NCBI RefSeq assembly: GCF_031769215.1 | Contig: NW_026782032.1 | Coordinates: 186,001 to 250,000 of the forward strand | DNA length: 64,000 bases | Source: Ylistrum balloti | Lineage: Eukaryota | Direction of reading: 5' to 3' | Part shown: positions 3,142 to 32,752 of the stretch, piece by piece | Position numbering within the stretch: the first letter of the stretch is position 1 | Layout: each line of letters starts with the position of its first letter | Notes under the pieces: generated by a model | What the model saw: the letters and a program-made list of their open reading frames with translations, nothing else | Databases searched by the model: none | Told to the model about the DNA's origin: nothing | Translations under genes and position numbers: made by a program

Positions 3142-4593
3142 GTGTTTCCATCGATGTCTAGCACAGAGGTATATACATGTATCTTTGCTATTGTGCAGGT
3201 TATTTCCTCCACACGCACCAAGCCGAATGTGTACATGTTAACTGTGTCGGCCTTGGTTCAGAGTATAAATGCCTTCATGCAGGTTGGAAACATAGACAGT
3301 CGAACACATCAAGGTTCTAACCAACATGTTTGTAGAGGTAAACTAACATTTTTTCATTTCTTAGTCTTCATTATTGCCGCAACACGTGGCACCAGCTTAC
3401 CTGATAATACAGAAAGGACCCTCATTGAGAAATTGCTGAGAAATTATGACGTCAATGCACGCCCAACGTCTAACCCGCAGGATTCTGTTCAGGTACGCGT
3501 GGGCTTCGCGCTGGACGGGATCATCCAGGTTGATGAAGAATCCCAGACCATAACATCTACAGGTAAAGTCACGTTCGTGTGGAACGATGAGTATCTATCA
3601 TGGAATGAAACCACATATAGAGGAGTGAAAATGTTAGCCCTTGATAGATCACGCGTTTGGTTGCCCGATGCTGTGATTCCAAGCAGAAATGGCGGCGATT
3701 TCATCATTAACGAAAGCAAAGGATATGTGAATGTCAACTCTGGCGGTCAGCTGACATTGACATCTCGTGGGACGTTCGTCACTTTCTGTAGTATGGCTAT
3801 GACAAAGTTTCCATATGACCAACACAAGTGTTCTATTATTATAGAACCACATGTTTCAACGAGCCAACAACAAACATTTTCTGCCATGAAGAAAAACAGC
3901 ACGTCTTCGTTTCAACAAATTACAACATGGTCATTTCTGCGTGATTCATGGTCATGTTCGGTCAATGGTCAATCGGACTTGACTCGGTACAGCACGTGCA
4001 GGCTCCTATTTACGGTTACGAGGGAAGGCGAACGTCGTTTCATTATCTCAGCCATTCTACTGATAGTGTTATCCATAATGAGCTGTTTTGTTTTCTTTTT
4101 GTCTGCAAAAACAATGGAGAAAATGGTGTTTATATTGGTTGTTTTCGTAGCTTACACATTCGTGTTTACCTTTATCCAGGAATCTTTCCGAGATACAATA
4201 AACGGATACAGTTATTTGTATATATACTTTGTTACAGAGTTTGGCATTATAAGTTTAATGTCCATCATCGCCATCTTTACTATAAACATTACATGTAAAG
4301 ATGATTTGAATATTCCCCCTTGTCTAAGGTGTCTTGCAAGGGTCGTCACATGTAAATTGAAGAAACACGTCAACGTTATCAGCTCAGAACGAAATGACAT
4401 CATACGGGCCCCGGGGGTAGACATGGCGTACAAAAACCGGACCGGAAAGTTCAGTGACAGTTCCGGATCTGAATACGTCTATGAAATCACATGGGTGGAT
4501 GTAGCGGCTGGATTGGACAGACTGTTTTTTATTCTGTTTTTAATTGTAAATATTGTTCTACCTGTGATCGTGTTCAATATGATCAATTCTTGA
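3142..4593 (+). CDS. Intronless Cys-loop ligand-gated ion channel subunit, nAChR-like non-alpha (copy 1, highly divergent)
   Basis: 483-codon ORF with L..NYD..ARP, WNDEYLSWN, WLPD, Cys-loop CSMAMTKFPYDQHKC (C-x13-C), four hydrophobic TM segments, -1' Glu (MEK) and WVDVAAGLDRLFF before M4. No vicinal CC. True start uncertain (ATG 3154 or ATG 3277). Confidence 0.9.
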   Translation: MFPSMSSTEVYTCIFAIVQVISSTRTKPNVYMLTVSALVQSINAFMQVGNIDSRTHQGSNQHVCRGKLTFFHFLVFIIAATRGTSLPDNTERTLIEKLLRNYDVNARPTSNPQDSVQVRVGFALDGIIQVDEESQTITSTGKVTFVWNDEYLSWNETTYRGVKMLALDRSRVWLPDAVIPSRNGGDFIINESKGYVNVNSGGQLTLTSRGTFVTFCSMAMTKFPYDQHKCSIIIEPHVSTSQQQTFSAMKKNSTSSFQQITTWSFLRDSWSCSVNGQSDLTRYSTCRLLFTVTREGERRFIISAILLIVLSIMSCFVFFLSAKTMEKMVFILVVFVAYTFVFTFIQESFRDTINGYSYLYIYFVTEFGIISLMSIIAIFTINITCKDDLNIPPCLRCLARVVTCKLKKHVNVISSERNDIIRAPGVDMAYKNRTGKFSDSSGSEYVYEITWVDVAAGLDRLFFILFLIVNIVLPVIVFNMINS

Positions 4594-5904
4594 TTTTTTC
4601 TTAAGTCTTGTTAACAAGGTCATGTTTATCTTGATAAAATATCTTATATTGACAAACACCTTGCAAGATGTTGCATTGACAACACCCAAGTTTTATAACA
4701 ACACTTTTGATATTTTTTTATGGGAATGCTGAATGTCTCTATCGGTAATGCTATTGTTTACAAAATAGATAGTAACTCAGACATGGTAAGGACATAATAT
4801 TTAATTCAACACTCACAAAAACATCAACGACCATCAGGTCCCGGAGGTTAAAAGACTGGTTAGGGATAACCAGTGATTATAGAAAACAAAAATGAATATG
4901 AATGAAACAAAATTGGAAATAATTTTAACCATTGGTGAAAATCTATTGAAATGGGCCAGATTCATATATTGTGAGTATCAGTTTTGCCTTAAACACTCTT
5001 GGCTGTTCCATGGCTGTCACAAAGCAACATGGGCCTAATTACAACGTGTTGTGGACAAAACCACGATACTCAATCGGATATCGGATGGATTTTATTCATT
5101 GTTGATAAACATTATTGATTTACGAATGATCCGACTTGACATTGATAGCTTGATTTGTATCATTTTCATCTATAATATGTTAATTTGATATGTACAATAT
5201 ATGATGATTTGTCTTCTTTCTTGCATTGAACAAATGACTCTTAACGTGATATTTTTTCTGAATTTCAATGAAAAAAAAATATGTGTTTTTCCATTGCTTT
5301 AAAACATCTGTCTTTATGAAATAAAATCTGTTGATGGATTTTAACTCACAATATTTTAATAATTTTCTGTCGTTCATGTCGGGAATAAGTACTCTTTGCT
5401 ATCTCCCATCAATCTCAAATATATAGTGTTTTAGCCTTCCATATTAATGATTCCTTGCCTTTACCTGGCGGGCCTTAGGAATCTCATATATCACACGAAG
5501 ATAGAAAGAGAAAAACACACGCACACAAGCAACCTCACAACAAAACCTATGCAAAGGAGAAAAAATACAAAACAACATTTTGATTTTGTGTAAATCGTTT
5601 ACAATGTTTTATAAATCTTTCTCCTGAATGTAATGTCTATATATTGCTATCCTGATATACCTGGCCAATTTTCTTTGGATCATACGTGTCAGTGTTATGT
5701 CATTTTATATACTGAATAGGCACAGAGTAAAAACGATACAACTATAAACTCACTATATAAATGATTTTCATTATGTTTCATTTTTTTTTTTTAATTTTCG
5801 ATGGTATGAATTTTGACGCGAGACAGGTTGTTGCTAATGGAGGAAACCGGATTATCCGGAGTATCCGGATTCTCTGTTGGTCTGGTTTGAAAATTATCGA
5901 TCTA

Positions 5905-6800
5905 ATCGTATGCAGAGTTGTCATCAGTGGTAAAAAAACAAATTGGTTAACTATTAAGGCCGGTGTTCCTCAGGGCTCAATTATTGGTCCTCTTTCGTTT
6001 TTAATTTATAAAAATGATATTGCTAAAGATACACATGGTAAAATCATGCTATTTGCTGATGACACCTCTCTTTACGTAGAACTAGTGCCGAAATCCTAAA
6101 TCAAGATCGGAATAAAATTCATAACTGGTCGCAAAGATGGTTCGTTTATTTTAACTCCTCCAAAACTGAGACCCTACTCATCAGTAAAAAATTCAAACCT
6201 TTTCACCCACTGCTAACCATGAACAATATTAACATATCTGGGGTTACTTCTCACAAACATCTAGGTATTTTTCTTTCTGGAAATGGTAATTGAAATGACC
6301 TCATTAATTATATAATATCTAAAATTTCACCAAAAATAAATATTTTGCGTAAATTTAAGTTTTCGCTAGATCGGTATAGTCTCCAAACCATGTACTTTAC
6401 TATTGTTTGGTCTATGTTAGAATACAGTGATTCAATTAGAAGCAGCCAGGATTGTCACTGGTTGTGCCAGACTAACAAGTAGGGTAACGTTGTATATTAA
6501 AAACAGACTGTCTACTCCTGAGAAAAGACGGAAACATCACAAACTTTTTCACAAAATGGTGCCCGGTCTATCCCCACAATACCTCATAAATATCCTTCCT
6601 CAGCGTAACCGAAATACTCGTACTGGAAATAATTTTCGTCCCCCGATTAGCCATACATGTTTCTTTAGCAAGTTCTCCTTATCATCAGTCATTTCATGTT
6701 GGAATTCTCTACCAGATCTTTTCATGAACGACCCTTCTATTTATAAACTTACAAAAACATCTATGACCAACAAAAAAAACCAATATATTGAACCTGAGCC
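5905..6800 (+). mobile_element. Degraded 3' fragment of a non-LTR retrotransposon (CR1/L2-type reverse transcriptase)
   Basis: [27 protein letters not shown]...[12 protein letters not shown] motifs, then stops and frameshifts; downstream IQLEAARIVTG and S...WNSLP motifs typical of LINE ORF2 C-termini. Confidence 0.85.
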
Positions 6801-8714
6801 GTGTTAGTGAAAGGTGATGTGCTTTCCACTGCGCAGTCTAGCGGTCCTCAGAGTGTTAAACACAAGGATGAGGAAGGCATTCAGGAGGGAAAAAAGTATA
6901 ATGACGTCACTAACAACAAATAATGAAAAATACTTATAAGTTAAAAAAATGAAATATTTTCGTTAGTTTTGTTACAAAAATTAGCTTCTTTTTTTTTATA
7001 ATGGCCCCGATTATTTAAACACTAAAAATCGTATATATATTATTTCAAACCGCGATATTTTGTTAACGTACATTCCCACATCCCAAATGAGTAGGTAAAA
7101 GCAAAAAGCTTTGAAATAAATAATTATTAGAATCCATGTAGTCTATCTACATACACGTGGAAACAAGCAATTAAATCGCTGTGTTCATTTTGCAGATACG
7201 TGATGAATATGCAATCATACAACTTTAAAAAAGGCAAAAACGTTTTAATAGACAAAACAAAATCCATAAATAATGGACAACTGGAACATTGTTAAGGTGT
7301 TATATAGATAAAGGTACAGTTAATGTAGGTAAGCTCTATGCCCAATTAAGGGGGTCACCTTTAATCTTTATTTGATCTTTTGCATTTCTTACAACATTCA
7401 CATTGACATCTTGGGGAAGAAAATGGAAAACAAGAACAAAAACAACAAAAGTAAGAAAAAGCCGCCCGAAGTAGCGCCGTAAAAATTAGTCGCAGACATT
7501 GAAGTGTACATGTTTACAATTGTTTGTTAAGATTTAATTAATTCTTATGCAAACAGACAAGTGTCACACATCACCTTATGTCACGTTTGTTTAAGCCAAA
7601 TTACTGACATAATTCGGCTTTTTAAAAGCAAATTGACCACAGACCAGCCGATGAATAAAGTTTACCTGTAGTCGTCATGCGAGTGAACCGTCGCTGTCAG
7701 GTGGGCTGCACGCGCTAAAGGTATAAAATTTGTTAAATTAATTTCTGGTGAAACATACTGCCGTATTTGTTGAACAATTCACCAGGAAGCTTAAGGAAAG
7801 ACTCGACACTAATATTCTCTGAAGAACAGTGATTGAGAGGAATCTTTTATTTGACAACCAATCTTCAAGGTAAGTCCTTTGGATATTTTATAACATTTCA
7901 CAATTGATATATGTGAACTGATTAATTATAATGATTAATGCGGACTAATTATTTTCATTAAGAAAAAAAAATAAGAAAAAAGAAAAGAAATACAGTGTTA
8001 TTCATTTCCACACGTTGTGTCCTTTTCCTTTTTGCGAGCACGTTTATTTCAACTAATATTTGTTTCTTAATTAATAACAATGATTAATATAAACTTTATT
8101 TTATTCCATAATAACATGCGAATAATACATAGCAAAGTATACATAGGAATTGGAATTGGAAACAAGTTAAACAACTTATATAAATCCTTTTCCATTGAAT
8201 ATCTAAACTAAATCAAGCGTGATGACGTAATTGGTGAATTATTGGGAATTAAAGTACAGACAGTTAATAAGAACTCACAATTACAATGATTTACATCAAT
8301 TTTTCAATTTTCTTGAGAAAAAAAATCTAGAAAAAAAATAATAAAGAGAAAAATCGTGTTATTCATTTTCACGCGTTCTGTCCGTCCTTTTCCTTTTCCG
8401 TGCACGTTTATGAATCAAGATAATATAACCCCAGAAATCACGATCACAAATAGGAAGGTTTGTGTTTTTTTTCTTTTATAAAACTCGTTACGTAGTTACC
8501 AGCTACTTCACAGATATCTGGGGCGATAAACCAAGCTCTGTGTATGGAACGATACAAGAGCGTATATTGTAATTACTCATGCGTGGCGTAATTACTAGTG
8601 CGTAGTGTAATGGTAGTTACACAGGTACAGACCAGCATTCCATCAGTCAACTCAACGGACAGCAGCCAGTATTTTCATGGAGAGTATGTCGAATGAAGAT
8701 GAAACTGATTGAAT

Positions 8715-10345: not shown

Positions 10346-11708
10346 GCAGATAAATGGATCATAGATATACATATTCATTTATGATAAAAATTAGCTGGTT
10401 TATGAAGGCGAGGCTGAACTTTAAACTAGATTTTGATATTTAAAAAAGTGATATTAATCCTTTAGACGTGGAATTAGCCTCCATAGGGCATTCTTGTCGA
10501 AAGTTGTTAAATAAGCATTAAATAGCATGAAATAAATAGAAGAGTGACTGGTATCTTTAAACACGTAGCTTCTCAGTCTCCTGAGCTTTGCGATATCTCC
10601 AGATTTTAGAGCCAAACATTATTTTTTGACAAACTTGTCAAAAAACAAAAACTAAAAACAGGAAGACAAGATTCAATATTTAAAAAAAACTTTCGGCATC
10701 TATTTTTTACAGCAAAATAACTTTCAGGTCTTTGGTCTGCAAATTACTCTTGTTTTGTTAATTTCTTTTGAAATTTAATAAAAGCCATTAATAATTAAAT
10801 TCATCGACTGTTTCAATCTTTTCTTTATCATCATACTATCTTTCATTCGTATGTATAAAACCATCGTGCCTAGCTATATACGGCTTGCTTGTGAGTTGGC
10901 CGGTGTAGCCTCGTGTGAAGATCTGACGTTCCCTATAAATAGCAGACCGAACATTTCTATCTCTTAAATGATAATCTTATGTCAATGTTGACATTCATTG
11001 TCATCTTAGATACAGAAATTTTCTGTCTATACACATGGCTATTTGTGTTTCTCAGGAAGACTGTATAGGTGTGGTTGTGTCTTTGAGCAAGGAACTTTAT
11101 TGCTAAAGACAGCATGCAACGTACCTCATGTATGTTGTTCAGCGAGGTTGCCACTAGTTACTACCAGGAGACCTCAATCGAAATGTCCCTAACTGCTCCT
11201 GCCCTAAAAATACAACAGTTTCAACAGATTTCTGTTTTTGTTTAAATAACAGTCAAACCTCTAATTTCTACAATATTCATCGAATATTAACATTTTAAGT
11301 AAAATAGCAAGCTCATCTGTTAATAATTTGGAGTTCGATCGAAACAAAAGGGAGACAAAACATGCAGAAGTTACATTACAATAATATTCCATCCTTTCAG
11401 ATCGCTACTTGTACCAGTTATCGCCGATATTAATCACATTTCCGTACGTACTATAAGTTGAGAAACTGTTAGCTGGATATACATCATTAGCTATTATCAA
11501 AAAACTTATTCTATTCCATGAAATAAAATGTTACTACAACCTGTGATTAGGCTAAGGGATTACCATGACCCCTGAATAAGTAATCTTATAACGACGGCAA
11601 GTTATCTGTAGTTCGAGATTCGTATACTCTAGTGTAATGTATTGACTGAGAATTTGTGAACATGCAAATTTCAAATATAAAATGTATATTTTTTGCCAGG
11701 TATATACA

Positions 11709-13064
11709 ATGGGTCGGAACAACGAATTTGCATCCGAAAACGACACCATCAACATTGAAGAACTAATTAAAAAGTACACATGGAAACGTTTTCTGAAAAC
11801 CAAACCGCTGCTGCGTCGTCCGTTCTACAGAAAAAGCTGTTTCACTATCGATTTCAACTGGGCATACCTAAATTTCAAACACAGAACCACTAAATTTGAC
11901 ATTCGGGAGGAATTTGTCAGCTCTCATGAAGCCAGATTAGCAACCGGAAATGATGACCCGAACCTCGTGCAACGTCAACAAGAAGGCACTGACGAAAAAC
12001 ATAACAAAAAAGTTCTCTACAAATCGAAGTACGTAAATGATACGCCATTCGACCAAATTCATAAAATCAACACGACACGTGAGACGAAAACATCTCTCAG
12101 TGTTGATATTCAGAACACTTTCACAAAGGGCCAAACTTGTGAAATCGGTCTGACAACACCCCCGCAATTTCCCGTCACAGTACAGGCGGGGTTTAGTAAA
12201 GAAGTGTCGATCAGCAACAGAAACGGAGAGTCATTTGAGGATACCGTGACCTGGGCGATCAACCATGACGTAAAGGTGGCTAAAGGGCATACTATGATCG
12301 CGACAATGTCTGTGTCACAAAAGAACAGAGTAGCCGAATTTGAAATTGAAACGACTATATCCATTTCGGATGGTAAAGACATGCCTATATTTGTACGACG
12401 TGTATCAGACAATTCGCAAGTTTATGTGGAGATGTTGAATGATCTTAAATTCGTATTTGAAAATGTGGCGGAGAGTAGTAAGTATGTCGCTCTTAAAAAA
12501 GAGGAAAAAGACCCAGGCAGAAATTTGCTGAGACAGAGTGTCGTCATTAAGACAAACGGCACGTGCAAAACTTTGTCGTGGAAGAAACATGACATCTACG
12601 TACGGAGTGTACCAACTTCAACTTTAAAATCTGAAAGAAACGAGGATAATTCGCCAGAGGTCGGCGACAGCGCGTCGACATTGTCAGATGTCGGAAACAG
12701 CGAGTCGACGTCATCTGAGGTTGGAAATATCGAGTCGACGTCGTCAGGGGTCGGAGATATCGAGTCGACGTCATCTGAGGTTGGAAATATTGAGTTGACG
12801 TCGTCAGGGGTCGGAGATAGCGAGTCGACGTCATCTGAGGTTGGAAATATTGAGTTGACGTCGTCAGAGGTCGGAGATAGCGAGTCGACGTCATATGAGG
12901 TTGGAAATATTGAGTCGACGTCGTCAGGGGTCGGAGATAGCGAGTCGACGTCATCTGAGGTTGGAAATATTGAGTCGACGTTGTCAGCAGTCGGGGATAG
13001 TGAGTGTCAAACGTCTGAAGCAATGTGTCATTTGAAGAAACCTGTTGATAATAATGACATTTGA
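11709..13064 (+). CDS. Aerolysin/ETX-MTX2-family (LIN-24-like) beta-pore-forming protein with C-terminal acidic Ser/Thr decapeptide repeats
   Basis: LYKSKYVNDT..DQIHKINTTRETKTS...TFTKGQTCEIGL..P...VQAGFSKEVSIS...FEDTVTWAINHDVKV..GHTMIATMSV matches the Ser/Thr-rich beta-strand pattern I recall for LIN-24/ETX-MTX2 proteins. No signal peptide. A splice acceptor (ttttgccag, ends 11699) just before ATG 11709 argues against ATG 11682. Confidence 0.75.
   Translation: MGRNNEFASENDTINIEELIKKYTWKRFLKTKPLLRRPFYRKSCFTIDFNWAYLNFKHRTTKFDIREEFVSSHEARLATGNDDPNLVQRQQEGTDEKHNKKVLYKSKYVNDTPFDQIHKINTTRETKTSLSVDIQNTFTKGQTCEIGLTTPPQFPVTVQAGFSKEVSISNRNGESFEDTVTWAINHDVKVAKGHTMIATMSVSQKNRVAEFEIETTISISDGKDMPIFVRRVSDNSQVYVEMLNDLKFVFENVAESSKYVALKKEEKDPGRNLLRQSVVIKTNGTCKTLSWKKHDIYVRSVPTSTLKSERNEDNSPEVGDSASTLSDVGNSESTSSEVGNIESTSSGVGDIESTSSEVGNIELTSSGVGDSESTSSEVGNIELTSSEVGDSESTSYEVGNIESTSSGVGDSESTSSEVGNIESTLSAVGDSECQTSEAMCHLKKPVDNNDI
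12654..13010 (+). repeat. Coding 30-bp tandem repeat (about 12 units, alternating A/B 60-bp dimer)
   Basis: tcatctgaggttggaaatattgagt(c/t)gacg alternates with tcgtcaggggtcggagatagcgagtcgacg, encoding SEVGNIESTS / SGVGDSESTS. Confidence 0.9.
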
Positions 13065-14952: not shown

Positions 14953-16161
14953 ATGGGTGATTGGTGTCTTCTGCTCTTTGTCTTGGCGGGAACGTGTGTA
15001 TCAAACATCCATAGTTCATCAGAAAAACAACTCCTAAATGACCTGTTTCTTACTTATGACAACAGAGCTCTACCTGTTCTCAACAGAAGTCATGCTGTTC
15101 ACGTTAAACTGGCATTTTATCTCGACACCATTCGAGATCTTGACGAGAAAAACCAAGTGTTGACACTGAAAGGATACTTTATGCTTGCCTGGACTGACCA
15201 GTTCCTCGTATGGAACGCGACACAGTATGATAACATTGCATTAACCACGGTACGGTTAAAAGATATCTGGCTTCCTGATATCGGAATTTACAACAGCATA
15301 AACTCCTTCGAAACTATATTAGACAGTGAATCTAACATTGGAGTTCCTTCTAACGGTAACTTAGCTTTAGCGCCAGGTAAGGACTTTTCTATACTCTGTG
15401 AGGTTTCTGTTTGGAATTACCCATTTGATACTCAGGCGTGTGTGATGAGGGTGGGCCCTAAGTTCACGCATAATTCAATGCAAACAATCACACAATTGTC
15501 TGATAAAATGGATTTCTCATTCATGCGTGAAAACTCGGAATGGAAAATAATTTCTTCCGGAATCAAATGTTACGTGTTAAGAACCTCTCCAATGTGTGTG
15601 CTTAATGTGACGATTCAGAGAAGATCTGAACACTTTATACTACATTTGGTGACACCGGTCATACTGCTGTCAATCATGAACCCTATGACTTTCCTTATTC
15701 CCCCTTTGTCCGGCGAGCGTCTGTCATTTGGAATGGCGTTGTTCCTCAGTTTTTCATTCTTTATTAGCTCAATTTTGGATGATCTACCGGTGGCTCTCAA
15801 CGAAACCTGCTATTTTACATTATTCGTACAATGCATATTTTGTCTTGGTGGTGTGCAGTGTTGTATAAGTTGTGTGATTACGCGGCTAAGTTTTAGGTCT
15901 TGTGATCACCAAGTCCCTCATTGGATACTTCGAGTACTTTGTATATCATGGGACGTGTCAAAACGGACTCAGGACAGAAAAAATGACGATGTAAAGCCGT
16001 GTGTGACAAATGACGTCAGAAATGACGTCATAGTTGAAGGTCGCATCAAAGCCTTTACCTGGACAGAGGTGATGCTGAAGCTAGACCTCGTGATGTTTAT
16101 AGTGTTTAATGTCCTCACATTTGTTACCATCACAACGGTACTCATTATGATTGTACCATAG
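14953..16161 (+). CDS. Intronless Cys-loop channel subunit, nAChR-like non-alpha (copy 2)
   Basis: 402 aa with signal peptide (MGDWCLLLFVLAGTCVS), EKQLLNDLF..YDNRALPV, WTDQFLVWN, WLPDIGIYNS, Cys-loop CEVSVWNYPFDTQAC, GERLSFG at M2, LP in the M2-M3 loop and WTEVMLKLDLVMF before M4. No vicinal CC. Confidence 0.95.
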   Translation: MGDWCLLLFVLAGTCVSNIHSSSEKQLLNDLFLTYDNRALPVLNRSHAVHVKLAFYLDTIRDLDEKNQVLTLKGYFMLAWTDQFLVWNATQYDNIALTTVRLKDIWLPDIGIYNSINSFETILDSESNIGVPSNGNLALAPGKDFSILCEVSVWNYPFDTQACVMRVGPKFTHNSMQTITQLSDKMDFSFMRENSEWKIISSGIKCYVLRTSPMCVLNVTIQRRSEHFILHLVTPVILLSIMNPMTFLIPPLSGERLSFGMALFLSFSFFISSILDDLPVALNETCYFTLFVQCIFCLGGVQCCISCVITRLSFRSCDHQVPHWILRVLCISWDVSKRTQDRKNDDVKPCVTNDVRNDVIVEGRIKAFTWTEVMLKLDLVMFIVFNVLTFVTITTVLIMIVP

Positions 16162-16575
16162 GATAATACCTGTTTAGACATGTAACTCAAGCACACCCAT
16201 GAATATTTCTCTGTACTTAATTGCTCACTTTAGCAAAATATGAAATACTTTTCTAATTACACAAAGCATGGAAACCCACCTTTCAAACACAGAGGCATAC
16301 CGTAAGGGATGTCTTGATCTCCAATCACCATGTTCAGTGGTACCTAATTTTATTCTTTCGTAAACAATTGCAGGGCTTTCTACTCCAGCTGCAAGAAGAG
16401 GTCATCTTAATATTCTTGTATTTTTTCAAAAGTAGAAATCAGTATGAAAGGTTCTTTCCCGTGCCATTATGTGCACTGAAATTATTTATGTTTAACAGTT
16501 TTTTTTAAAGATTGTACACAAGACATACAAGACATCAACATTAGATACTGTACACCGAAACAGTTAATTAAACTT

Positions 16576-16617
16576 ATCACACAGCTGTTTCGTCCTTCCG
16601 GGACTCGTAGGCGATGC
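16576..16617 (-). ncRNA. Hammerhead ribozyme motif, minimal type I, family A (degenerate)
   Basis: Minus strand: catcgc CTACGA GTCC cggaa GGAC GAAAC AGCT GT G TGAT. Perfect stem II and palindromic stem III, but the CUGACGA core is damaged and the triplet is GUG. Confidence 0.65.
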
Positions 16618-17019
16618 TAAGGGTCTAGCTTCTGAAGCCTAGGAGGCGACTGAGCATTCAGGTTACGGCAAATCTCCGACTGAAAACTACCAACACCTGC
16701 AATCTCGAAGATTGTACAAAAGACACACATATTATTACAAATTTTCAGTTTTTTTTGTTTATTCTTTTTATCGGACAGAACTGACACAGCATACAAAAAA
16801 GGTGTTATGATATCACTTGTCAACCTTAAATCATGAAACTATTGGGAACAAAATTTATGACTCGCCGCCATTTGTAATAATTTGTGTAACACTTGCTGCA
16901 AAATATCAATTGCATACAGGAACGACAACAAAATTGTTCAAAAAGACACATAAATGAACAGTACCTTTTAAAACAAATAAGGGTTTAGATATCACAGAGC
17001 CAAACAATGAATTAAACTG

Positions 17020-17062
17020 CATCATACAGCTGTTTCTTCCCTCTAGGACTCGTCAGTGATAC
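17020..17062 (-). ncRNA. Hammerhead ribozyme motif, minimal type I, family A (near intact)
   Basis: Minus strand: ATCA CTGACGA GTCC taga GGAA GAAAC AGCT GT A TGAT. Stem I atca/tgat, intact CUGANGA and GAAA cores, GUA triplet; one mismatch at the G10.1-C11.1 pair. Confidence 0.75.
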
Positions 17063-17628
17063 TATGGGCCGAATTTAGGAAGAACATTTATATTATAAAA
17101 TCTATATGGGGCAATGCACTAACACCATTCAATAAATTTAATAATTTTCATGTCTGATAAGAACGTCATGTACGCGTGTATATTCTAAACCATTCGAATC
17201 AAATCATTCGAGTGAAAAAAACCCGTGACATGTAGGTTATTTATTTATTGACGTATGTCGATAAATATAAAATGTGTTCATTATCTTTCATTTGTTACTC
17301 TTACGGAATTCATTATTCATTCTGTTGATTCGCTTTTTCTTTTTCTAAGATACAACAGATAAATAAAGATAAAATGGATTGAATGGCATAAATACTACAA
17401 AATACAAAAATAGTCTCTAAAACCGTGTGTTTGTTCCAAATTCCCGTATTCCATGTTAATACAGTGAATGACCAAGAGCAAAGCAAAACCAAATTCACTC
17501 ATTTCTGAATTTAATAACCTTTGCTAGAATATTCTTGATGCTCGTTTTCCTAATTTCGGATCAAATTGTACAAAACATCCATACTTATCATATCTATTAA
17601 GTATTTCTTTGTTTTCCAGATCTTTGAC

Positions 17629-18391
17629 CAGCGTTACTGCTGACAGACTACAGAGTTTTGGACATAGTTTATAATGAAAATAATTCTTCATTTACCTTCA
17701 AGTCTGTAAAGATTCTGTTGATTCACCTTAAGTCAAAGATAAAACAGAAGAATAAAATGGAAAAAAATAAATACTATAGAATACTAAATATTCCCTTAAA
17801 TTGTATACTTATTCCAAATCCTGTATTCTATGCTAACAGAATGACTAATAGGAAAGCAAAATCACGTTAATTCATTTCTTAATTATTCAATCTCCGCTAA
17901 AGTATTATCGATATGTATTTATCAAATTTTATTGTACAAGAAACTTCCATATCTATTAATTTTCATATCTGTTATTTTTGTATTGTTTAAATAGATATTA
18001 TTATATTTGATTTACTTAATATGTAGAAATTAAATTTGAATTTGATGTATATTCGTTATATATCTTGACACATTTGAACTTTGTATGACACAAGAAAGAA
18101 GGATACTACGGCGACGACTGAAGAAAGGGGTCTGACACAGTTCTGGCGTGTTTGTCGTATACAGTTAAAAGGAAATCTAATAGTTCTGTATCCTTGCTGG
18201 CAAAACTGAATAAGCAATATCATTGAGACGTTTGTTTCTGTTGAAAAAAAGCATTGTACTTTCAGCAATCGTTCTATTACTAACATCTCCTTGTTTTATA
18301 AATGTCTGATCAGCGTTTATGTTGACAGACTACAGAGCTTTAAACATGTTTATAATAAAAATAGTTCTTCATTCACGTTCAAGTCTGTAAA
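17629..18391 (+). repeat. Dispersed imperfect direct repeat of about 80 bp (17629-17710 and 18311-18391)
   Basis: cagcgtt..tg(c/t)tgacagactacagag...tttataat.aaaata.ttcttcatt.ac.ttcaagtctgtaaa present twice. Confidence 0.75.
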
Positions 18392-18944
18392 CATTGAAAT
18401 AGCTGATTAAGGTATTTATCGTTGAAACTTTGATGACGTCCAGGTACAGAGTATGAATAAAAAAGTAAGTACATCTTCTACAATCGGATGAAAGAACATT
18501 TGAATTTCGTAAGCAATGTAGATATTAAACAATACTAAACAGTCTATGAAACGTTCCTTTACACCTGGGAATTGAATATTAATTTCGAATATTGAAATTA
18601 CGAACTTCATAGTCCATTTCATACAGACCTTTACATTTGTCCCAGAGATGTCAGAATTAGTATGGACATTTGTAATTCATTTTCACTCAGGAAAACAAAA
18701 CAGATTACTCTTTATTTATCCCTAAACTTCTTCAGTTTATTCAAGTATAGTTACGGATATACATGTTGGACAGGTGTTGAGAACTATAAGAGACACTCAT
18801 CTTCACTCTGGTTTGCCGAATGGCATTGGTCTGTGTACTGGAATATCTGACGAATGTGTGGTATGTATTTTCATGTGATAAAGAACTATTGAAGGAATAA
18901 TAAGCATAAGGATGATGGTCGGATGACGTACTGGTAATGTATTG

Positions 18945-19075
18945 TCTTTCACCTGACGTACGGGTTTGATTCCCCGATCGAACGTGAACAAAGATGGAGG
19001 CCACCCGTCCGACCACGTGCGTTTTCCCAGGATACTCCAATTTCCTCCCGCACTTCCATCCGGGTCAAAAACAGC
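18945..19075 (+). mobile_element. Degenerate tRNA-derived SINE (V/Meta-type core)
   Basis: B-box-like cgggtttgattcccc followed by ccgaccacgtgcgttttcccaggatactccaatttcctcccgca, resembling the GGTTTTCTCCGGGTACTCCGGTTTCCTCCCAC core of metazoan V/Meta SINEs. Confidence 0.5.
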
Positions 19076-21529
19076 TTTTCATATAAGCTTAAAGATTGTT
19101 TTGCATATGTTGTGAAATAAATAAAATTTATATTTATGAGTATTATGGATATTTTAGTTTCTATTGTATCAAACACATTATAATGACATAAAACAGCAAA
19201 TACAAATTTTATTTCAATTCCGCATCATAAATTTTACCTGAAAGCATTGAACGATAAAGAAAATAAATAAAATAAACTGGAACAGTAAATTAGCATATTG
19301 AAAGGTTAGTTAAAAGATCATGCTTTGAAAACATGACATTTTTTATTGTTGTTGTTGTCAAGATTGTAAGATATAAAGTTTTTATTAAGTTACAAAGTAT
19401 TGGAGACCTATGATTTCGATAATTTCAAATCAGTTCAATGATGCCGTTACGGTATTATATAGTTTTCTCACAACAAAACAAAATGGTTATCCCCCTTCTT
19501 CTTAATACCAATCATTTATTCACAAGCAATTGAATCCTTGAAGACACAACAGCATTTTCTGTATATACTATAAACACCTATAGTTACCTCCAGCATCAGC
19601 AACAGGAACAGTTTACCTATAAAACGTGATAATCTTTATTAACTTATATCTCAAGCCCAGCGCGTCATCCCTCTTTTATTCAGGAATCTCCGTGTAAGTC
19701 TTTAGTTTGTTTTTATCTTTAAAAAGTTCCATTGATTTTAAGTTTGAATTTTCATTATTTTAGTCTATACGTCTGCTATCAACATACAGCGAGAATTTTT
19801 GATATTATGAATACATCATTGTCTATATATGGAAAATTCCTAACTTATACTCTAATTTCTTGTAATAGTGTTTTAACTTCCCTGTTTTATAAATCAGTGA
19901 TTTTTGGAAGACGGACATTTTGAAATGGTATGTTTTACCAAATTTAGGCTATGGAAATAGATAAATATTTTATCAATATTTTAAACTTGACTTTTCCTCG
20001 CCACAGACAACTCAGAGCCCTGAAGTCGCCATGATTTGACTTGTCAAAAGCTAGAAATTCTGTGCGTTACGATTTATCAAGAGAAAACAAAATTGATCAG
20101 TTTAAACTTTCTGGAAGAGATTATTTTACCAACTGATATCAACCTGATATAGCTATATCTATATTAAGCACAAACAGCGATTGAAAACTGTTTTGACGAT
20201 CTTTCGAAAACGTCTGTTTCCCTTGATCAAGCAAAAATTCCAATTACCGAGTCTCGACGAAAATGAACTATTCGGCGACAGGACGAAAGTGTAAAGTCAA
20301 AGCGCATTTTCGTCTCTATATCAATCTGGCTGTAAAAATGGATAATTTAGATGACGCAGCTGTTGTCCACTTCGTCTACTGTTTTCCTGCAGATAAACAT
20401 CTCCTTATCGTGCCCATTGTTACGTGATTACAGAGTGTCTGCGTGTTAGAATCTTTGATGTTTGATCATTTGACAAATTCGTTTTTTCATTAAAAAACGA
20501 AAGGTTTAGTAATATCCCTTGAAAATATTCGAATGACATGATTGTGTCTGACGCTTCTGATAATAATCGGACCTTGTAGTTATGTCATATAAGATACACT
20601 ACAGCACGTTCAGAATAACTGCCTTTCAAATCAGATCCTAAACCAAAGTTTTCTCGAATTTTAGCGATTTTAAAAATCTCTCAGCCCTAATAATTTCTGG
20701 AAAATTTGCAGCGGGGGAATTTCAAGTACCAATTCATCATTACACTATGAATAGAATCTGTTACGATAGACACAAGAGAAAGGTAGCTAATATCAAAAAT
20801 AAATTTCTTTTATTCAAACCCCTAATTTTTCCAAGATTTGAAAAAAAAGATCTGTTGATAATGTTACTAGATAGTCCATTACCTCGGAGATTCCTCCCGT
20901 TAAGAGTCAGTCAAAACTGTGTGACGTATTTTTTATATTCAAAATAAGCAGACACTATATTTGAAATATAAAAATACTTTAGTTATCTTAAATTTAATCT
21001 TCAATATACAAGTTTCATTTACGCGTTTACCATAAATCAGAAATACGTAGGACTACAAATAAAGAAAAACAAAATCCGAAGATTGAAACTTATAACGAAA
21101 CCTTATTCGGAAATGACTAACTCGAAAGAAAGTTATTGTCAGGAACGCCTAGAAAATATCCTTTGATAAACAAGATACGTGTATGAAATGAATTAGAAAG
21201 CATTGTTGCAAAACACTACAATAATGTATATCGGTATGCAACTAGAGAGACAAATACCACAATAAGATAAAAATAGATATAATATATTTCATAGAGTTGT
21301 AAGAAAATTGATATACCATAAAACAAAACATGGTTATTCTTTCAACGATTTATTAAAATTTCTGTTAAGAAAAAAGTAACATATTTCAAGTTGTCATAGT
21401 TTTCATATACAACACTGTACAACAAACATATCAATTTTACATTATTATAACTATTTTTATTCCTTATATACCAATGTACTATATACAAGTAAATCTATAT
21501 TAACGGATTTATTCAAACATGAAACACTT

Positions 21530-22771
21530 TTAAAAAGTCTCTGTGAGATATGTAATAAGAATCAATGATTTTATAACAATGAAAAATAAAAAACAGATCA
21601 TGTTTAACTTAGATCCTAAGGCCATCCAATCAAAATCTACGTTTTCACAAGGTCGTTCATCAGTCTTGATATTTTTGGCTATATCACCTTCATTATCTCC
21701 TTTAGATAATTCCTCTACGATGATGACCGGATCAGGGTAAATTTTTCTATTCTGTTTCTGTGTGAGGAAAAGGATTTTTTCAAGCTTCATCCACCAACTT
21801 TTTTCACTAACATGCTTTGTTCTTGCAGCAAGACGTAGAGTGATATTTGACACACATAGCTCCAGCCCTCCTATGCAGAATTGCACTATCAGATAAACTG
21901 TCAGAAGACATGTTTCAGTTGAGGTCACAGGAAGTGATTCCTTTACGGGTCCAATGAATACAGCAAAGGCTAGGAATATTGCTACCCCGAATGAAGTGTT
22001 CTCTCCTGAATTGATAGGAATCACGAATATAAAACAGTTCATGTATGACAAAAGTACAAGTGGTATAAGCGTGTGAACGATCTGATAAAATGGCCGCCTT
22101 TTTATCTCTATATTGAATGACACACGAGAGTTATACGACGGTGGAATCGTGCTCACTGATGTCGATGACCCAAGAAATTCCCATTCTGTGTTCAGCTCTT
22201 TAGAAACCACGGCTATATCATCCCTTACCGAACTAAATATTTGTTCGGTAGGTCCTCTGAGCCATGATATAAGACTTATGTCGCATTCCTGTTTGTCGAA
22301 TGGATATTTTCGAACTGAGATTGGACATGATGTTGCCATTGATACATCCGGACACCAATTCACTGTTCCATCAGGAAGGATCTGAGCACCAGATATGCTT
22401 TTAACTATAGCATTTCTGTCATCATTAGAATTCAAGATAGTCACGGCGGGAAGCCAAATCATAGAGGGACTCACAATTATACTAGAGACTTGATATTCAC
22501 TCTCATTCCATACTAAAAGTTCATTCTTCCAAGAAAAAGAAAACCATCCCCGTGTTAGTATCTCTTGACTTTCCTCTGTAACTTCAAACGACATCAGAAA
22601 GTAAGAGGCAGCAATGACAACGGGAGCATTGGGATCTGTCACGGGTCTGGCATGTTTGTTGTAACCGGGATCGTTAAAGAGATGGTTCAGCAGATCTGTT
22701 TCCGTGTTGGTAACACCAAACGCTAAGTCAAAAACCCACAACAGAACGAGCAATACCAACGACACGTTCAT
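21530..22771 (-). CDS. Intronless Cys-loop channel subunit, nAChR-like non-alpha (copy 3)
   Basis: 413 aa with signal peptide (MNVSLVLLVLLWVFDLAFG), ETDLLNHLF...YNKHARPV, WKNELLVWN, Cys-loop CPISVRKYPFDKQEC, loop-B SW retained, IKRRP pre-M1, GENTSFG and four TM segments. No vicinal CC. Confidence 0.95.
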   Translation of the reverse strand: MNVSLVLLVLLWVFDLAFGVTNTETDLLNHLFNDPGYNKHARPVTDPNAPVVIAASYFLMSFEVTEESQEILTRGWFSFSWKNELLVWNESEYQVSSIIVSPSMIWLPAVTILNSNDDRNAIVKSISGAQILPDGTVNWCPDVSMATSCPISVRKYPFDKQECDISLISWLRGPTEQIFSSVRDDIAVVSKELNTEWEFLGSSTSVSTIPPSYNSRVSFNIEIKRRPFYQIVHTLIPLVLLSYMNCFIFVIPINSGENTSFGVAIFLAFAVFIGPVKESLPVTSTETCLLTVYLIVQFCIGGLELCVSNITLRLAARTKHVSEKSWWMKLEKILFLTQKQNRKIYPDPVIIVEELSKGDNEGDIAKNIKTDERPCENVDFDWMALGSKLNMICFLFFIVIKSLILITYLTETF

Positions 22772-22852: not shown

Positions 22853-22868
22853 ACTTTATATATATATA
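22853..22868 (-). promoter_or_regulatory. Candidate TATA box for receptor copy 3
   Basis: Minus-strand TATATATATAAAG about 85 nt upstream of ATG 22771; could simply be an AT microsatellite. Confidence 0.3.
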
Positions 22869-26974: not shown

Positions 26975-27035
26975 CAATTCAGATAGTATAGAACTCGTCA
27001 GTGATGATGAGGGCCTAAATTTTGAAATCTAAGAC
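26975..27035 (-). ncRNA. Partial hammerhead family A remnant
   Basis: Minus strand: ttcaaaatttaggccctcatcATCA CTGACGA GTTC. Shares the 5' flank and core with the copies at 17020 and 43221; the GAAA half has decayed. Confidence 0.45.
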
Positions 27036-29367
27036 GCGACAAAATTGATCGGGAAAAATATCAAAATTTAGATTGAGAGATACACTGGCTTTATAATTGA
27101 ATGAAAGCTTTAACATTTACCAATCATTACCAAAACATGTTGTAAATATATACGTTAAGATTTCCGCATGTTTTGCATTATTTCTAGATGACGGTAAACA
27201 ATCTTTATCTTAATATCAACATTTGCGATTAATCTTGAACATACGGTTTTGCCATTACTTATAATGTCACAAAATTTTATATAACCATGGTTTAAATTTG
27301 AACATCTATATGTATGTTACATGATACATATATATGCAAAAAGTAAATAAAACATCAATTGAAAAATTTGTTCTTGGAAGTATTTTGTTGTTGTTCGTGT
27401 TTTCAATGACTGCAGCTACTGATTACATAATACTATTGTGGTTGTCAAATTTAAATGTAATGAGTGTTATTCACTCTCCCTGCATCGAGGTGTGTTTACA
27501 ACCAGTAACTACATGAGATGCGAATGCTCACAAAGCAATATGTAGTTAACCCAATCAAAACAATCTGTATGTTTGTTGAAACCCGTGAAAAAAATTACAT
27601 CCGATGTTTTCAGATGCGATGAAACAGTCGTTTTAGACATGAAAACGTCCATAACGATAAAACCCATAAATTAAACTTTAAACAAATTGCTTAACAATTT
27701 TAGCAGAAACATCAGGAAAATGTGTACAGTGTGGGATTCCAGGAAAAATAATTCAAATAGTAACAGATTATAAACAGTATCATTGGGCCAACTCATCATA
27801 CTTAAAACGTATTTATAAATTATAACTATAATTGTAATATAGATAATTCGCTTTGTTATATTTTTATCAGCCAGTCATATTAAGCTAAATTCTTTCCTAG
27901 TAAACAGATTTTTTCTCAAAACAATGACAAACTCCTGCATATCTATACTGTCACTCTCCCTAATTTAGAGTGCTCAAGATTTCGTTATCATTTTAGCACG
28001 GTTGCTTTGATAGGCGTCTTGTCTGCAAACAACTTAAAGTCAGACGAGATATGTTTTATGTTTCCGAAGAGGTTAAAGACGTTATGTTTACGTGTTATGA
28101 AAATTCTGTTAAAACAAGTATGTTATTGATATCGAAAAAGCAATTGCCAAGCCAACGAAAACGTCACCGATTTCTAATTCTGTTGTGTTAAAACATGTTA
28201 CGTATGAAAGCAAAGACGACACATGGTGCACATCTGTTAAAGACTCTGCCTATGTACCGCAACCCCTAAATGAATTAACAAATTACAGCCCCATATCATT
28301 AAAGATATCTGGAGATGAAGAAATGCAACGTGTTTTAAGAATGATCAATGCTTACACGATGCTTTATATTTTTATATTTGTACATGAAAATTAGGTTGGA
28401 AACATTCTGTATTCGATGCATTTTTGTTTTTTGGTATTGCTCTTGCCTGAATTTAGTACCACAGTTCAAGTATATATTCAAAACATGTACATAGTAATCT
28501 GCGACGTTCTTTATGGTTTATTTATTGGTAAGTTCCAGTAACATTCTTTTTTAATATCTTTGAATATCTCTTCACAAAAAATTATAAATACATCGGAAAA
28601 TTATTATCACATCATTATTAAGTAGAACCCAGTTTAACAGAAATTGATATGAAATACGAATTTAAAAATAAAGGTTTAAACACACAAAGACATATTAAGA
28701 AACCAATAGAAAACACCGTTCGCATTGATCACACTGATAATTGTACCATCTGATAATAGTTTTCTTATGTCATCGATGAAGACGGATGAAGAATTATCAA
28801 ATTCAGTATTCCTGATGCCTCATTAGCAAAATGTAATTAATATCTAACTGAAATGTTACTGAAATAAGGATATCATAAAGATCTAGTTTAACATTCCTTG
28901 ACAATAGACCTTTATTGTTTTACTGTTCAAACGGTGTTGAATTGAATTCCACCACTGACTAAAATTGACAGGACCACACTATATTTACATGTATATTAAA
29001 CAATCACTTGCAAACAAGATTATTATATTTCACTTTCAGGGTAGATCAAATACATTAGATCTATAATAACTAAAAGAAGTTAGCAATTTAAAATCGAATG
29101 AAAACAAAACAATTCTTAATACTACTTAATTCTGGTGGCCAGACCGCACTCGATTTGCAAACAGGTGGCTGTGCCTTTAGATGAGGCATGCAATATGAAC
29201 ATTGACTGCAAAACTATTACTTTACATGTAAATCAAAGCTTTTGATGACTAACAAAGGAAACCCCATCAACATATATCATCTTAATAGCTGAACGTATCA
29301 TAGTTGTACAATCATTCAGCTTACCCATTGCTTCACGTTAATACATTTTTACATTTAATGATTTTAT

Positions 29368-30726
29368 GAAATTTATACCTGTAAAGTACTTATACTTCAA
29401 TAAAGAGTGTAGATTGTACATCAAATTTATACCTATACTGTACTTATACTTCAATAAAGAGTGTAGATTGTACATCAAATTTATACCTATACTGTACTTA
29501 TACATCAATAAAGAGTGTAGATTGTACATCAAATTTATACCTATACCTATGTACTTATACTTCAATAAAGAGTGTAGATTGTACATCAAATTTATACCTA
29601 TACTGTACTTATACATCAATAAAGAGTGTAGATTGTACATCAAATTTATACCTATACTGTACTTATACTGTAGTTATATTTCAATAAAGAGTGTAGATTG
29701 TACATCAAATTTATACCTATACTGTACTTATACTACATCAATAAAGAGTGTAGATTGTACAACAAATTTATACCTATACTGTACTTATACATCAATAAAG
29801 AGTGTAGATTGTACATCAAATTTATACCTATACTGTAGTTATATTTCAATAAAGAGTGTAGATTGTACATCAAATTTATACCTATACTGTACTTATACAT
29901 CAATAAAGAGTGTAGATTGTACATCAAATTTATACCTATACTGTACTTATACATCAATAAAGAGTGTAGATTGTACATCAAATTTATACCTATACTGTAC
30001 TTATACATCAATAAAGAGTGTAGATTGTACATCAAATTTATACCTATACTGTAGTTATATTTCAATAAAGAGTGTAGATTGTACATCAAATTTATAACTA
30101 TACTGTGCTTATACATCAATAAAGAGTGTAGATTGTACATCAAATTTATACCTATACTGTACTTATACATCAATAAAGAGTGTAGATTGTACATCAAATT
30201 TATACCTATACTGTACTTATACATCAATAAAGAGTGTAGATTGTACATCAAATTTATACCTATACTGTAGTTATATTTCAATAAAGAGTGTAGATTGTAC
30301 ATCAAATTTATACCTATACTGTACTTATACATCAATAAAGAGTGTAGATTGTACATCAAATTTATACCTATACTGTGCTTATACATCAATAAAGAGTGTA
30401 GATTGTACATCAAATTTATACCTATACTGTACTTATATTTCAATAAAGAGTGTAGATTGTACATCAAATTTATACCTATACTGTAGTTATATTTCAATAA
30501 AGAGTGTAGATTGTACATCAAATTTATACCTATACTGTACTTATACATCAATAAAGAGTGTAGATTGTACATCAAATTTATACCTATACTGTGCTTATAC
30601 ATCAATAAAGAGTGTAGATTGTACATCAAATTTATACCTATACTGTACTTATACTTCAATAAAGAGTGTAGATTGTACATCAAATTTATACCTATACTGT
30701 ACTTATATTTCAATAAAGAATGTAGA
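29368..30726. repeat. 54-bp satellite, about 25 copies, with a 216-bp higher-order unit
   Basis: Unit tacatcaaatttatacctatactgtacttatacatcaataaagagtgtagattg; the variant ctgtagttatatttc recurs every fourth unit, and the ORF starts 29863/30079/30295/30511 are spaced by 216. Confidence 0.95.
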
Positions 30727-31564
30727 TAATACATGTACTGTATTATAACAAAGCAAACACTCTATAAACACAGTTTTACCTGCATTTACTGTGATTTAAA
30801 GAAAACAACTAAATAATATCAAAATAGCTTTAATTAACACGCCAACCTTTATATATACCAATCATCTCTACGTATAATATATTGGTAATATAATTGACAA
30901 ATGAAACGGTGCCTTAATTGGACTAAATGCTTAGATTTCGTTTTTTCCCATGCGTTTGATTTCGGGCAAGCATTGTAATACTTAAGATTAGACTCTTCAC
31001 AAAATTATAACACTGAGAGAAATTGATAAAGATTATCAGCTTCAAACTAAAGTTTGTCGACACTTGCTGTTACGTCTACCACTCATCGTTGATATGATCG
31101 GAAAATTCATCACGTGACTATTCGGGGCCTCATTTTAACCCGCCGTTTTGATATGATTTCTGAATACAATTGACGTATAATTATTTAATGAGCCAAAACC
31201 TAATTCGCCAGCCATGTTTCAAAATTTGTGTTTAAAAAATGGCCCCTTGTTTCATGCTATACGCGTGACAGAGCGAAATAAATAAATTTGAATTAAACTG
31301 AATTTAAAATTGCATGAGCAAAGACATTGTTTACACTCTACGAACGATAATGATATGAATTAGTGTTCGGTCGATCCTATTTTAATAAAAAAAAATTTGA
31401 CGTTGTTAACACAGCAGTTTTGCAAAATTTCAAATGTTTTAATTAGCAGAAAGTACACAACTATAAGAGCTATTCAGATTTTATAATGATTTTTTTATTA
31501 GTTATAAAATGAATATCTAACCGTTTATAAATGACGATAACCACTCATTATCTCTTTACCTGTA

Positions 31565-32752
31565 TCATATAATTATTAAGAGTACAACGCTAGTGATCAC
31601 GAGAACTGTAAAAGACTCAAACATGACAACCATTATAAGATTCATTTGATGGAGAACATCCGACCATGTCAGGTCCGGAATCCCATTCGCATGTGAATTG
31701 TCGGTTTCTTTTGCTGGCACATCCCCATCTGTAGCAATGCTTACTTTTTTATTTCCGTTTAGACAAGCCCGTTGCACGTAGGACCAATTTAGGTAATGGG
31801 TAATTCAATGGTCTTAGACCGAAAGGAATCTTTACAGCACTTGAACAACATTGCACGCCACCAAACCAGAACATTATTTGAACAAAGAGCGCAAAGTAAC
31901 AAGTTTCGTTAGACGCGATTGGCAATTCGTTTGCTATAGTCCCCAACATCAGCGAAAAACTCAGGAACAAAGACATAGCGAAAAAAAGTCTTTCTCCGGA
32001 TGCGCAAGGAATGAGGAAAGTAAACGGGTTCGTGATTGCGAGTAGAGTTACGGGTAGTACTGTACGTATCAGACACTTGCTGGGTTTCCTCTTCACTGTT
32101 ATACTGGTATTATAAATTGACATTTGGTCAGTATAGCACCATATGTAGGACTTGTTAAATGACCACTCGGAATTTTCACGGTAAAAGTTAGCGCGAATTT
32201 TGTCGTGGTCAGGATAGCTAATCTGCATCGAAGGAAGCGAATAGGTAGGACCAATATTGAATAAACATGTCTGTGTATCAAAAGAATATTTTCTGATCGA
32301 TATGTCACACAGTGTGGTGTAAAGTGATGCACTTCTCCTGTTTATACTTTCGTTGTTGTTTACACGTATTTTATCATGACTGTTAGGTAATGATTCAGAA
32401 CCAGACACTGAGTTATATAAAGCAACATCGGGGACCCATATATCTGATAAGGATGACAACACCATATCTGTCCCATTGTAACGATTGGGGTCCCATACAA
32501 GTGACAGATCAGTCCATACAAACGTGAAGTATCCTTTTGTGTAAAATACCTGATTCTTTTCGTCTATTTGCGTTATTTTCATCAGGGAGTATCCTATCTG
32601 TATTTCCACAGGTTCACTTTTATTAAGAGTATTCGTCTTCCGTATCCGCCCATTAGATGTTGGACCAAAGTCTGCTCAGATGGAATATCTTTACTCCACG
32701 AACCGACGATCGACGTGAACAAAATGATGGCTATTCTACATATAGCCATCAT
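31565..32752 (-). pseudogene. Frameshifted Cys-loop nAChR-like gene (copy 4), closest to copy 2
   Basis: ATG 32752 gives signal peptide MMAICRIAIILFTSIVGSWS..SEQTLVQHL..GYGRRIL. A frameshift near 32625 leads into LNKSEPVEIQIG, then Cys-loop CDISIRKYSFDTQTC (Pro to Ser), GERL, LPIASNETCYF..GGVQCC. A second frameshift near 31760 precedes WSDVLHQMNLIM/M4; stop at 31565. Confidence 0.85.

Follow-up and report, generated by a model that had tools for sequence, protein, structure and literature searches.

The 64,000-nucleotide window analysed here (the whole stretch of Ylistrum balloti DNA, assembly GCF_031769215.1, contig NW_026782032.1, our C175, positions 186001-250000, in a genome of 648.5 Mb) contains four loci of the nicotinic type of Cys-loop receptor. 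They were found by combining the listing of open reading frames (ORFs) with Pfam matches, and are named g1 to g4 in the order g1+ g2+ g3- g4-. Locus g1 occupies 3277-4593 on the forward strand (438 aa from the ATG at 3277, in a frame that is open over 3142-4593), and g2 occupies 14953-16161 on the same strand as a single ORF of 402 aa. On the reverse strand, g3 is a single ORF of 413 aa at 21530-22771, and g4, at 31565-32752, is a pseudogene of g2 type whose pieces are spread over two frames. In g1, g2 and g3 everything from the signal peptide to M4 lies within one frame. The first-pass annotation of this DNA had described four single-exon Cys-loop genes on strands +,+,-,-. The four loci, their strands and the single-exon nature of g1 to g3 stand, but g4 has broken frames and cannot be counted as a gene; in the protein comparisons below it is represented by its middle piece. 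A tblastn search of the whole window with the three intact proteins returned these four loci and no fifth copy.

All four loci match the ligand-binding domain (LBD) profile PF02931 (Neur_chan_LBD), with E-values of 1.5e-37 for g1, 1.3e-37 for g2, 6.1e-36 for g3 and 1.8e-26 for g4. The transmembrane (TM) domain profile PF02932 was matched by g3 (E 3.4e-11); g2 scored 21.8 bits, under the cut-off, and g1 had no Pfam match in this region. Four TM helices are given by a structural model in the case of g1 and by the continuous frame in the cases of g2 and g3, and M4 of g4 is out of frame. The 13-residue Cys-loop is intact, with both cysteines, in each copy. As had been noted earlier and is borne out here, all four keep the -1' Glu and the M3-M4 loops are short (66, 56 and 66 residues in g1, g2 and g3, respectively). 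The Pro-Ala-Arg motif is lacking throughout, the motifs at this place among the four copies being GER, GEN, MEK and GER (GER in g2 and GEN in g3), and the mouth of M2 is predicted to be of the cation type in all of them. The 9' residue is Leu in g2, g3 and g4 and Val in g1. Among PDB sequences searched with phmmer, the best relatives of solved structure were vertebrate muscle delta and alpha, alpha7, beta2 and 5-HT3A subunits. Judged by these features, all four belong to the Cys-loop family of pentameric ligand-gated channels and, within it, to the nicotinic/5-HT3 branch.

Residues of the acetylcholine site were called by alignment with P0006, a canonical Haliotis alpha10-like subunit that bears the vicinal cysteines (CC) and carries Tyr in loop A, Trp in loop B, Tyr-x-Cys-Cys in loop C and Trp in loop D. 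At the loop A, B and D positions, respectively, g1 has P, H and K, g2 has Y, K and Y, g3 has L, W and W, and g4 has Y, T and Y. Vicinal cysteines at the tip of loop C are absent from g1 to g4 in this alignment. The same residues had been read from the DNA beforehand, and they hold against the reference. The Tyr positions of loop C could not be aligned in the four copies, and the aromatic box (loop A Tyr, loop B Trp, two loop C Tyr, loop D Trp) is incomplete in every one of them. On these residues, none of the four would be classed as an alpha-type, acetylcholine-binding subunit.

It was suggested in the first-pass annotation that this dismantling of the pocket may mark the cluster as a chemosensory array. 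The loss is real, but the same traits are found family-wide. The genome holds at least 151 matches to PF02931, placed in many tandem arrays, about 120 of which comprise a whole LBD in one open frame of 350-630 aa. We sampled 60 single-ORF loci from the best LBD matches, a choice biased, if at all, towards conserved members. None of the 60 has the vicinal cysteines, the loop A Tyr is present in two (58 lack it), the loop D Trp in eight (52 lack it) and the loop B Trp in 46. The -1' Glu was found in 58, and both the 9' Leu and the M1 Pro in all 60. Pocket loss is thus common across the family and therefore no marker of this particular cluster.

Bivalves carry 99-217 nicotinic acetylcholine receptor (nAChR) genes, mostly intron-poor and arranged in tandem (Jiao et al., 2019; PMC6896357). 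According to the same study, the principal site is fully conserved in only 13 of the 132 Crassostrea gigas genes, expression of bivalve nAChR genes peaks in the gill, and silent genes in oysters are more frequent among intron-poor than among intron-rich nAChRs (PMC6896357). A 2026 MolluscaGenes preprint (PMC13174522) groups 3,586 molluscan sequences in 15 clades, some of them divergent and with altered binding residues; its "CR-like" clade, named for cephalopod chemotactile receptors (CRs), includes bivalves, and its divergent clades are said there to be possible servants of chemosensation. The cluster is a member of this known bivalve expansion of single-exon nAChR-like genes: its coding regions are single exons, its tandem neighbours are of the same family, its close relatives are restricted to molluscs, and the RefSeq models of Pecten maximus are the same single genomic ORFs. 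Diverse copies, degenerate acetylcholine residues and, for one ortholog of g1, gill expression are also common to the expansion and the cluster. The difference is that the cluster is made of four deep lineages instead of recent copies, retains the same order in three species, and includes lineages (g1, g2/g4 and the unlinked relative L010) with a loop C cysteine pair that 59 of the 60 other paralogs do not have.

The two cysteines of this pair stand on opposite strands of the loop C hairpin, at a spacing of 7-13 residues. The pair is present in g1, g2, their orthologs, the related proteins P0002 and P0013, and L010, the last being the single paralog of the 60 that has it. It is missing from the g3 lineage, and g4 has lost the second of the two cysteines. 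In glycine receptors and in GluCl, loop C is held by a disulfide across the hairpin strands. The g1/g2 pair lies at a similar position and takes the place of the vicinal tip pair, and a disulfide between the two cysteines is suggested by this position; unlike glycine receptors and GluCl, g1 and g2 would be nicotinic-type cation channels by their sequence. L010 (C442:1352950-1355150, ORF 262-1569 on the forward strand) is an unlinked single ORF and the nearest relative outside the cluster, at 32-35% identity. It retains the loop A Tyr, the loop B Trp and the loop D Trp together with the loop C cysteine pair, and may represent a less degenerate, ancestral state of the subfamily.

Gene g1 is the outlier of the cluster. 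Its nearest paralog in the genome is only 26-29% identical, and its orthologs, on an Argopecten irradians gill RNA contig (L004) and in P. maximus (L070), are 65-66% identical. Lineage members were found at 3277-4593 of the window, L070:3613-4872, L004:106-1362 and L066:20926-21249 (reverse strand). The frame is open from 3142, with in-frame ATGs at 3154 and 3277. The start Met of the orthologs corresponds to His in g1 and the nearest in-frame ATG, at 3277, is 21 codons upstream of it, so that 3277 is the likely but uncertain start. M1 of g1 has no Pro, a residue found in all of the sampled paralogs, and the 9' residue among its orthologs is Val in P. maximus and Ala in A. irradians. Conservation of M1-M3 is only about 60%, M2 being very hydrophobic and poorly conserved, while the best-conserved parts are the intracellular loop (82%) and M4 (79%). 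A motif around KFSDSSGSEY in the M3-M4 loop is nearly invariant in four species. Conservation of the loop and M4 above that of the pore helices is the reverse of the usual pattern in the superfamily. An AlphaFold (AF2) model of g1, built on a 44-sequence alignment, has a mean predicted local distance difference test score (pLDDT) of 84.5 and the full pentameric channel fold with M1-M4. Fold alignments of this model with nAChR chains gave TM-scores of 0.7-0.89 at 19-23% identity, and the KFSDSSGSEY region falls in a segment that the model predicts to be disordered. A further g1-like gene was found on L005, a 1512-nt contig of run SRR26445940. Its product, P0013, is 45% identical to g1 and is encoded by two overlapping ORFs (179-1138 and 1120-1452), with M4 in the second frame.

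Genes g2 and g3, by contrast with g1, follow the conservation pattern that is usual for channels. By domain, identity to orthologs is 77-100% in TM1-3, about 60% in the extracellular domain (ECD) and 44-49% in the intracellular loop. The g2 ortholog of P. maximus is a protein of 400 aa with 62-63% overall identity, of which TM1-3 are 77-81% and the ECD 61% identical; in its own genome the nearest relative of g2 is g4, at 41%. The orthologs of g3 in P. maximus, Mizuhopecten yessoensis and A. irradians are 57-63% identical, with an M1-M2 linker and M2 segment 100% identical in P. maximus, and its nearest genomic paralog is at 35%. Among PDB sequences, g3 scores highest with the muscle delta subunit (137 bits).

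Variability within the g3 lineage was examined in nine full sequences from four species. Column entropy is 0.22 in the TM region and 0.91 in the ECD. Inside the ECD, the loop D Trp is kept in all nine sequences, the loop B Trp in eight of the nine, and an Arg two residues past the latter is invariant, but loop A, the tip of loop C and two positions of loop E lie at the 80th-99th percentile of column entropy. Duplications of g3 are species-specific, occurring in Argopecten and, as a near-identical pair, in Mizuhopecten.

Locus g4 is a pseudogene that is still decaying. Its start codon (32752) and signal peptide are in one frame, which meets a stop at 32594; the LBD through M3 (32648-31749) is in a second frame, and M4 (from about 31740) and the final stop (31565) are back in the first. 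Comparison of the frames with P0002 and g2 places the first shift, between the signal-peptide or N-terminal piece and the LBD, at 32620-32655, and the second at 31740-31790, beside an A-rich run, where the middle piece has its in-frame stop at 31749-31751 (all on the reverse strand). We checked both zones in contigs of four DNA runs from two studies over 31300-33000, one contig per run spanning 31493-33000. None of the four runs has an indel at either zone, and two align without any gap at all. Four individuals, sequenced independently, have the shifts in common, which establishes them as real; assembly error as their cause is rejected, because short-read contigs of all four match the window at both sites. 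Two runs have additional frame-breaking indels inside the middle piece: X1 lacks one base at 31981 and two at 32321, and X5 has an extra A after 31980 and a second one after 32066. At the protein level the middle piece shares 43% identity with g2 and 49% with P0002, and its terminal branch is long (1.02). Just downstream of g4, at 31300-31527, there is a high-copy repeat in which many contigs end; the summed contig word depth there is 400-3,400, compared to 10-17 over the unique gene region.

The cluster is old. The gene order g1+ g2+ g3- is conserved in at least three species: P. maximus chromosome LR736848.1 carries g1+ g2+ g3- g3'-, and M. yessoensis NEDP02003738.1, read in reverse, carries g1+ g2+ g3- g3- g2+ g3- g4- g3+, the M. 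yessoensis orthologs being OWF48029, OWF48030 and OWF48032, with the g1 ortholog unannotated. Recent tandem duplication was considered as the origin of the cluster and rejected, since identity among the four copies is only 24-43%. A tree of 71 sequences gives every cluster lineage a stem length of about one substitution per site. The g4-like and both g2-like copies of M. yessoensis match in pieces over two or three frames (L069:9905-11108 and 20587-22033; L066:16594-17911), the two g2-like ones breaking at similar points, and these fragmented copies may be pseudogenes, genes with acquired introns or assembly errors.

Ratios of nonsynonymous to synonymous substitution (dN/dS) across relatives, a check proposed with the first-pass annotation, came to 0.14-0.22 for g1 to g3 and are rough given synonymous distances (dS) of 1.2-1.8. 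Gene by gene, the values were 0.14-0.21 for g1 against A. irradians, and 0.19-0.22 for g2 and 0.20-0.21 for g3 against P. maximus; against P0002, dS was saturated and gave no value. These ratios indicate purifying selection on g1, g2 and g3.

Indirect evidence of expression comes from the g1 lineage. A contig of 2,370 nt from run SRR23580857 encodes protein P0012, the g1 ortholog of A. irradians (65% identical). According to its depositors, this run is a gill metatranscriptome of Argopecten irradians irradians (PMC10989825). Presence of the ortholog in the gill fits water sensing and, equally, the general gill bias of bivalve nAChRs. Contigs with g1-like and g2/g4-like sequences also occur in SRR26445940, SRR26445941 and SRR27895284, which may be runs of either RNA or DNA.

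Three known systems, besides the bivalve expansion, are useful for comparison. Cephalopod chemotactile receptors, represented by CRT1 (PDB 8eis and 9e6b; van Giesen 2020, Allard 2023 and Kang 2023, as cited in PMC11526382), are likewise derived from nAChRs, intronless and clustered, with acetylcholine residues lost and a cation-type M2. Intronless structure, clustering and residue loss are thus CR-like features found at this locus, but the whole bivalve expansion has them. By PDB score rank, the cluster is no closer to CRT1 than to any nAChR: phmmer scores of g2 were 135 bits with human alpha7, 116 with Alpo4 and 92 with CRT1, and CRT1 did not appear among the 60 top-scoring PDB sequences of either g1 or g3. 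These ranks, which put CRT1 far below alpha7, Alpo4 and the muscle subunits, argue against membership in the CR clade, and any shared function would therefore be convergent.

The second system is Alpo4 of Alvinella pompejana (PDB 8bx5; PMC10338036), which g2 matches better than any other PDB protein once the alpha7 entries are set aside. Alpo4 is also a CC-less, nicotinic-type orphan from a lophotrochozoan and has no known agonist, but it retains the full aromatic cage (F103, W159, Y199, Y205, W65), which g1 and g2 do not. The third comprises the vertebrate muscle delta and beta, neuronal beta2 and beta4, and alpha7 subunits, which are the best matches in sequence and fold. They share the Cys-loop, the four TM helices and the -1' Glu with the scallop proteins, and the 9' Leu with g2 and g3. 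The scallop proteins differ in their low identity (19-23% in the fold alignments), their M3-M4 loops of 56-66 aa, their single exon, and pocket residues swapped for charged or small ones.

Our preferred reading, to which we give about an even chance, is that of an old syntenic cluster of non-alpha, CC-less subunits, three alive and one dead, used in local non-synaptic signalling. Genes g2 and g3 would encode pore-forming subunits of ligand-gated cation channels whose agonist faces no longer suit acetylcholine in the classical way: g2 has Lys at the site of the cation-pi Trp, and g3 keeps both Trp residues while its loops A, C and E vary. An accessory or signalling role appears more likely for g1 than that of a channel in its own right, because its hydrophobic M2 is poorly conserved, its M1 has no Pro, and a near-invariant, disordered motif lies in its intracellular loop. 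The likeliest use of such subunits would be local signalling in water-exposed epithelia such as the gill, a use that has also been put forward for the other genes of the expansion, and their ligand need not be external to the animal.

Several points weigh against this reading. The four lineages form, together with the unlinked L010, only a weakly supported group in the tree (Shimodaira-Hasegawa-like approximate likelihood ratio test, SH-aLRT, 86-87). The dN/dS values of g1 to g3 were obtained near the saturation of dS. A search of sequencing runs with the stretch 14953-22771, which covers g2 and g3, returned five DNA runs and no RNA, although so long a stretch may hide a small RNA. Residual DNA is an unlikely but conceivable source of the gill contig, unlikely because a genome of hundreds of Mb would have to be covered several times over to yield a contig of 2,370 nt. 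Both an accessory role for g1 and gating by something other than acetylcholine are proposed from residues. Finally, g3 has Trp in both loop B and loop D and might still provide the complementary side of an acetylcholine site.

The last point leads to the possibility that the cluster encodes beta-like complementary or structural subunits that join CC-bearing alphas, encoded at other loci, in acetylcholine-gated heteromers of the non-neuronal cholinergic system, for example in controlling gill cilia. The vertebrate beta, delta, gamma and epsilon subunits are normally without the vicinal cysteines and the aromatic residues of the principal face, and g3 in particular would suit such a role by its muscle delta match and by the constancy of its loop D and loop B Trp residues; g2 and g4, too, retain an aromatic residue (Tyr) in loop D. 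The vertebrate CHRNA5-A3-B4 locus is a cluster of different subunit types whose products co-assemble, and a conserved cluster of unlike subunits recalls it. However, the g1 lineage has Lys or Glu in loop D and g2 has Lys in loop B, and the loop E positions of g3 are variable instead of conserved and hydrophobic. In addition, not one of the 60 single-ORF paralogs is of alpha type, so that the partners would need to be multi-exon genes. We regard beta-like function as rather unlikely for the cluster.

The chemosensory idea sees the cluster as an array of ionotropic receptors that respond to contact or to cues in the water; it would be the bivalve counterpart of the cephalopod CRs, with pockets retuned to external ligands. 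In its favour, the genes are single-exon and tandem and have lost acetylcholine residues as CRs have (PMC11526382), a g1 ortholog occurs in RNA of the water-exposed scallop gill, and a "CR-like" clade with bivalves and possibly chemosensory divergent clades has been proposed (PMC13174522). The g3 lineage adds to this the pattern of a pocket that varies around a nearly invariant pore, together with its duplications in single species. Yet more than 100 paralogs have the same traits, the affinity to CRT1 is no greater than to any nAChR, and expression in the gill is what bivalve nAChR genes show by default (PMC6896357). Moreover, g1 and g2 are stable one-to-one orthologs in fixed order with dN/dS about 0.2, which is not the birth-and-death pattern that chemoreceptor arrays typically show, and one copy, g4, is dead. 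A chemosensory role is possible but unsupported, and we consider such an array doubtful.

A bolder and narrower proposal, which we hold to be improbable, concerns the g1/g2 subfamily. Its members may be ionotropic receptors of the scallop lineage for non-cholinergic, possibly waterborne ligands in the gill or other exposed epithelia, with g1 as an anchoring or signalling subunit that would act through its invariant intracellular motif. In this class, a CC-less loop C would be clamped by the cross-strand cysteine pair, and a charged residue would stand in for the cation-pi Trp.

That all four loci are decaying, functionless retrocopies is scarcely credible. In its favour are the broken frames of g4, where additional indels segregate, the M. 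yessoensis copies of g2 and g4 type that are scattered over several frames, and the more frequent silence of intron-poor nAChR genes in oysters (PMC6896357). Against it, the ORFs of g1 to g3 are intact in three or four species at dS >1 with dN/dS about 0.2, the M1-M2 linker and M2 of g3 do not differ between species, and the g1 ortholog is present in RNA, so that conserved open frames exclude wholesale loss of function for g1 to g3 and decay is accepted for g4.

The rest of the window contains other features of interest. Between g1 and g2, at 11682-13064 on the forward strand, there is an ORF of 460 aa without Pfam match, the tail of which consists of acidic units rich in Ser and Glu, encoded by 5.5 copies of a 60-nt tandem repeat (12674-13005). 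A tblastn search found no counterpart of it between g1 and g2 in the P. maximus (L070) or M. yessoensis loci, and it therefore looks like a lineage-specific insertion. At 45417-46160, on the reverse strand, a frame matches the C-terminal half of flavin-containing monooxygenase (FMO; PF00743, E 2.1e-15, profile positions 296-481) and is likely to represent a single exon of a multi-exon FMO gene adjoining the receptor cluster. Long tandem arrays lie at 29369-30734 (54 nt x25), 35447-35891 (52 nt x8.6), 35965-37366 (26 nt x54), 46289-46824 (44 nt x12) and 52579-53534 (30 nt x32), and account for the long repetitive ORFs listed on both strands.

On present evidence, the cluster is an unremarkable instance of an expansion that has already been described. 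Its practical value lies in three intact, conserved single-exon genes with clear orthologs in farmed scallops, in g4 as a natural pseudogene control, and in the unusual conservation pattern of g1. Should the narrower proposal for g1 and g2 be true, it would represent a second, independent conversion of a nicotinic receptor into a chemosensor, beside that of the cephalopod CRs. If an external ligand were shown, a neurotransmitter receptor would have become a sensory receptor in bivalves as well as in cephalopods, and the function of more than 100 unexplained bivalve nAChR-like genes would become partly testable.

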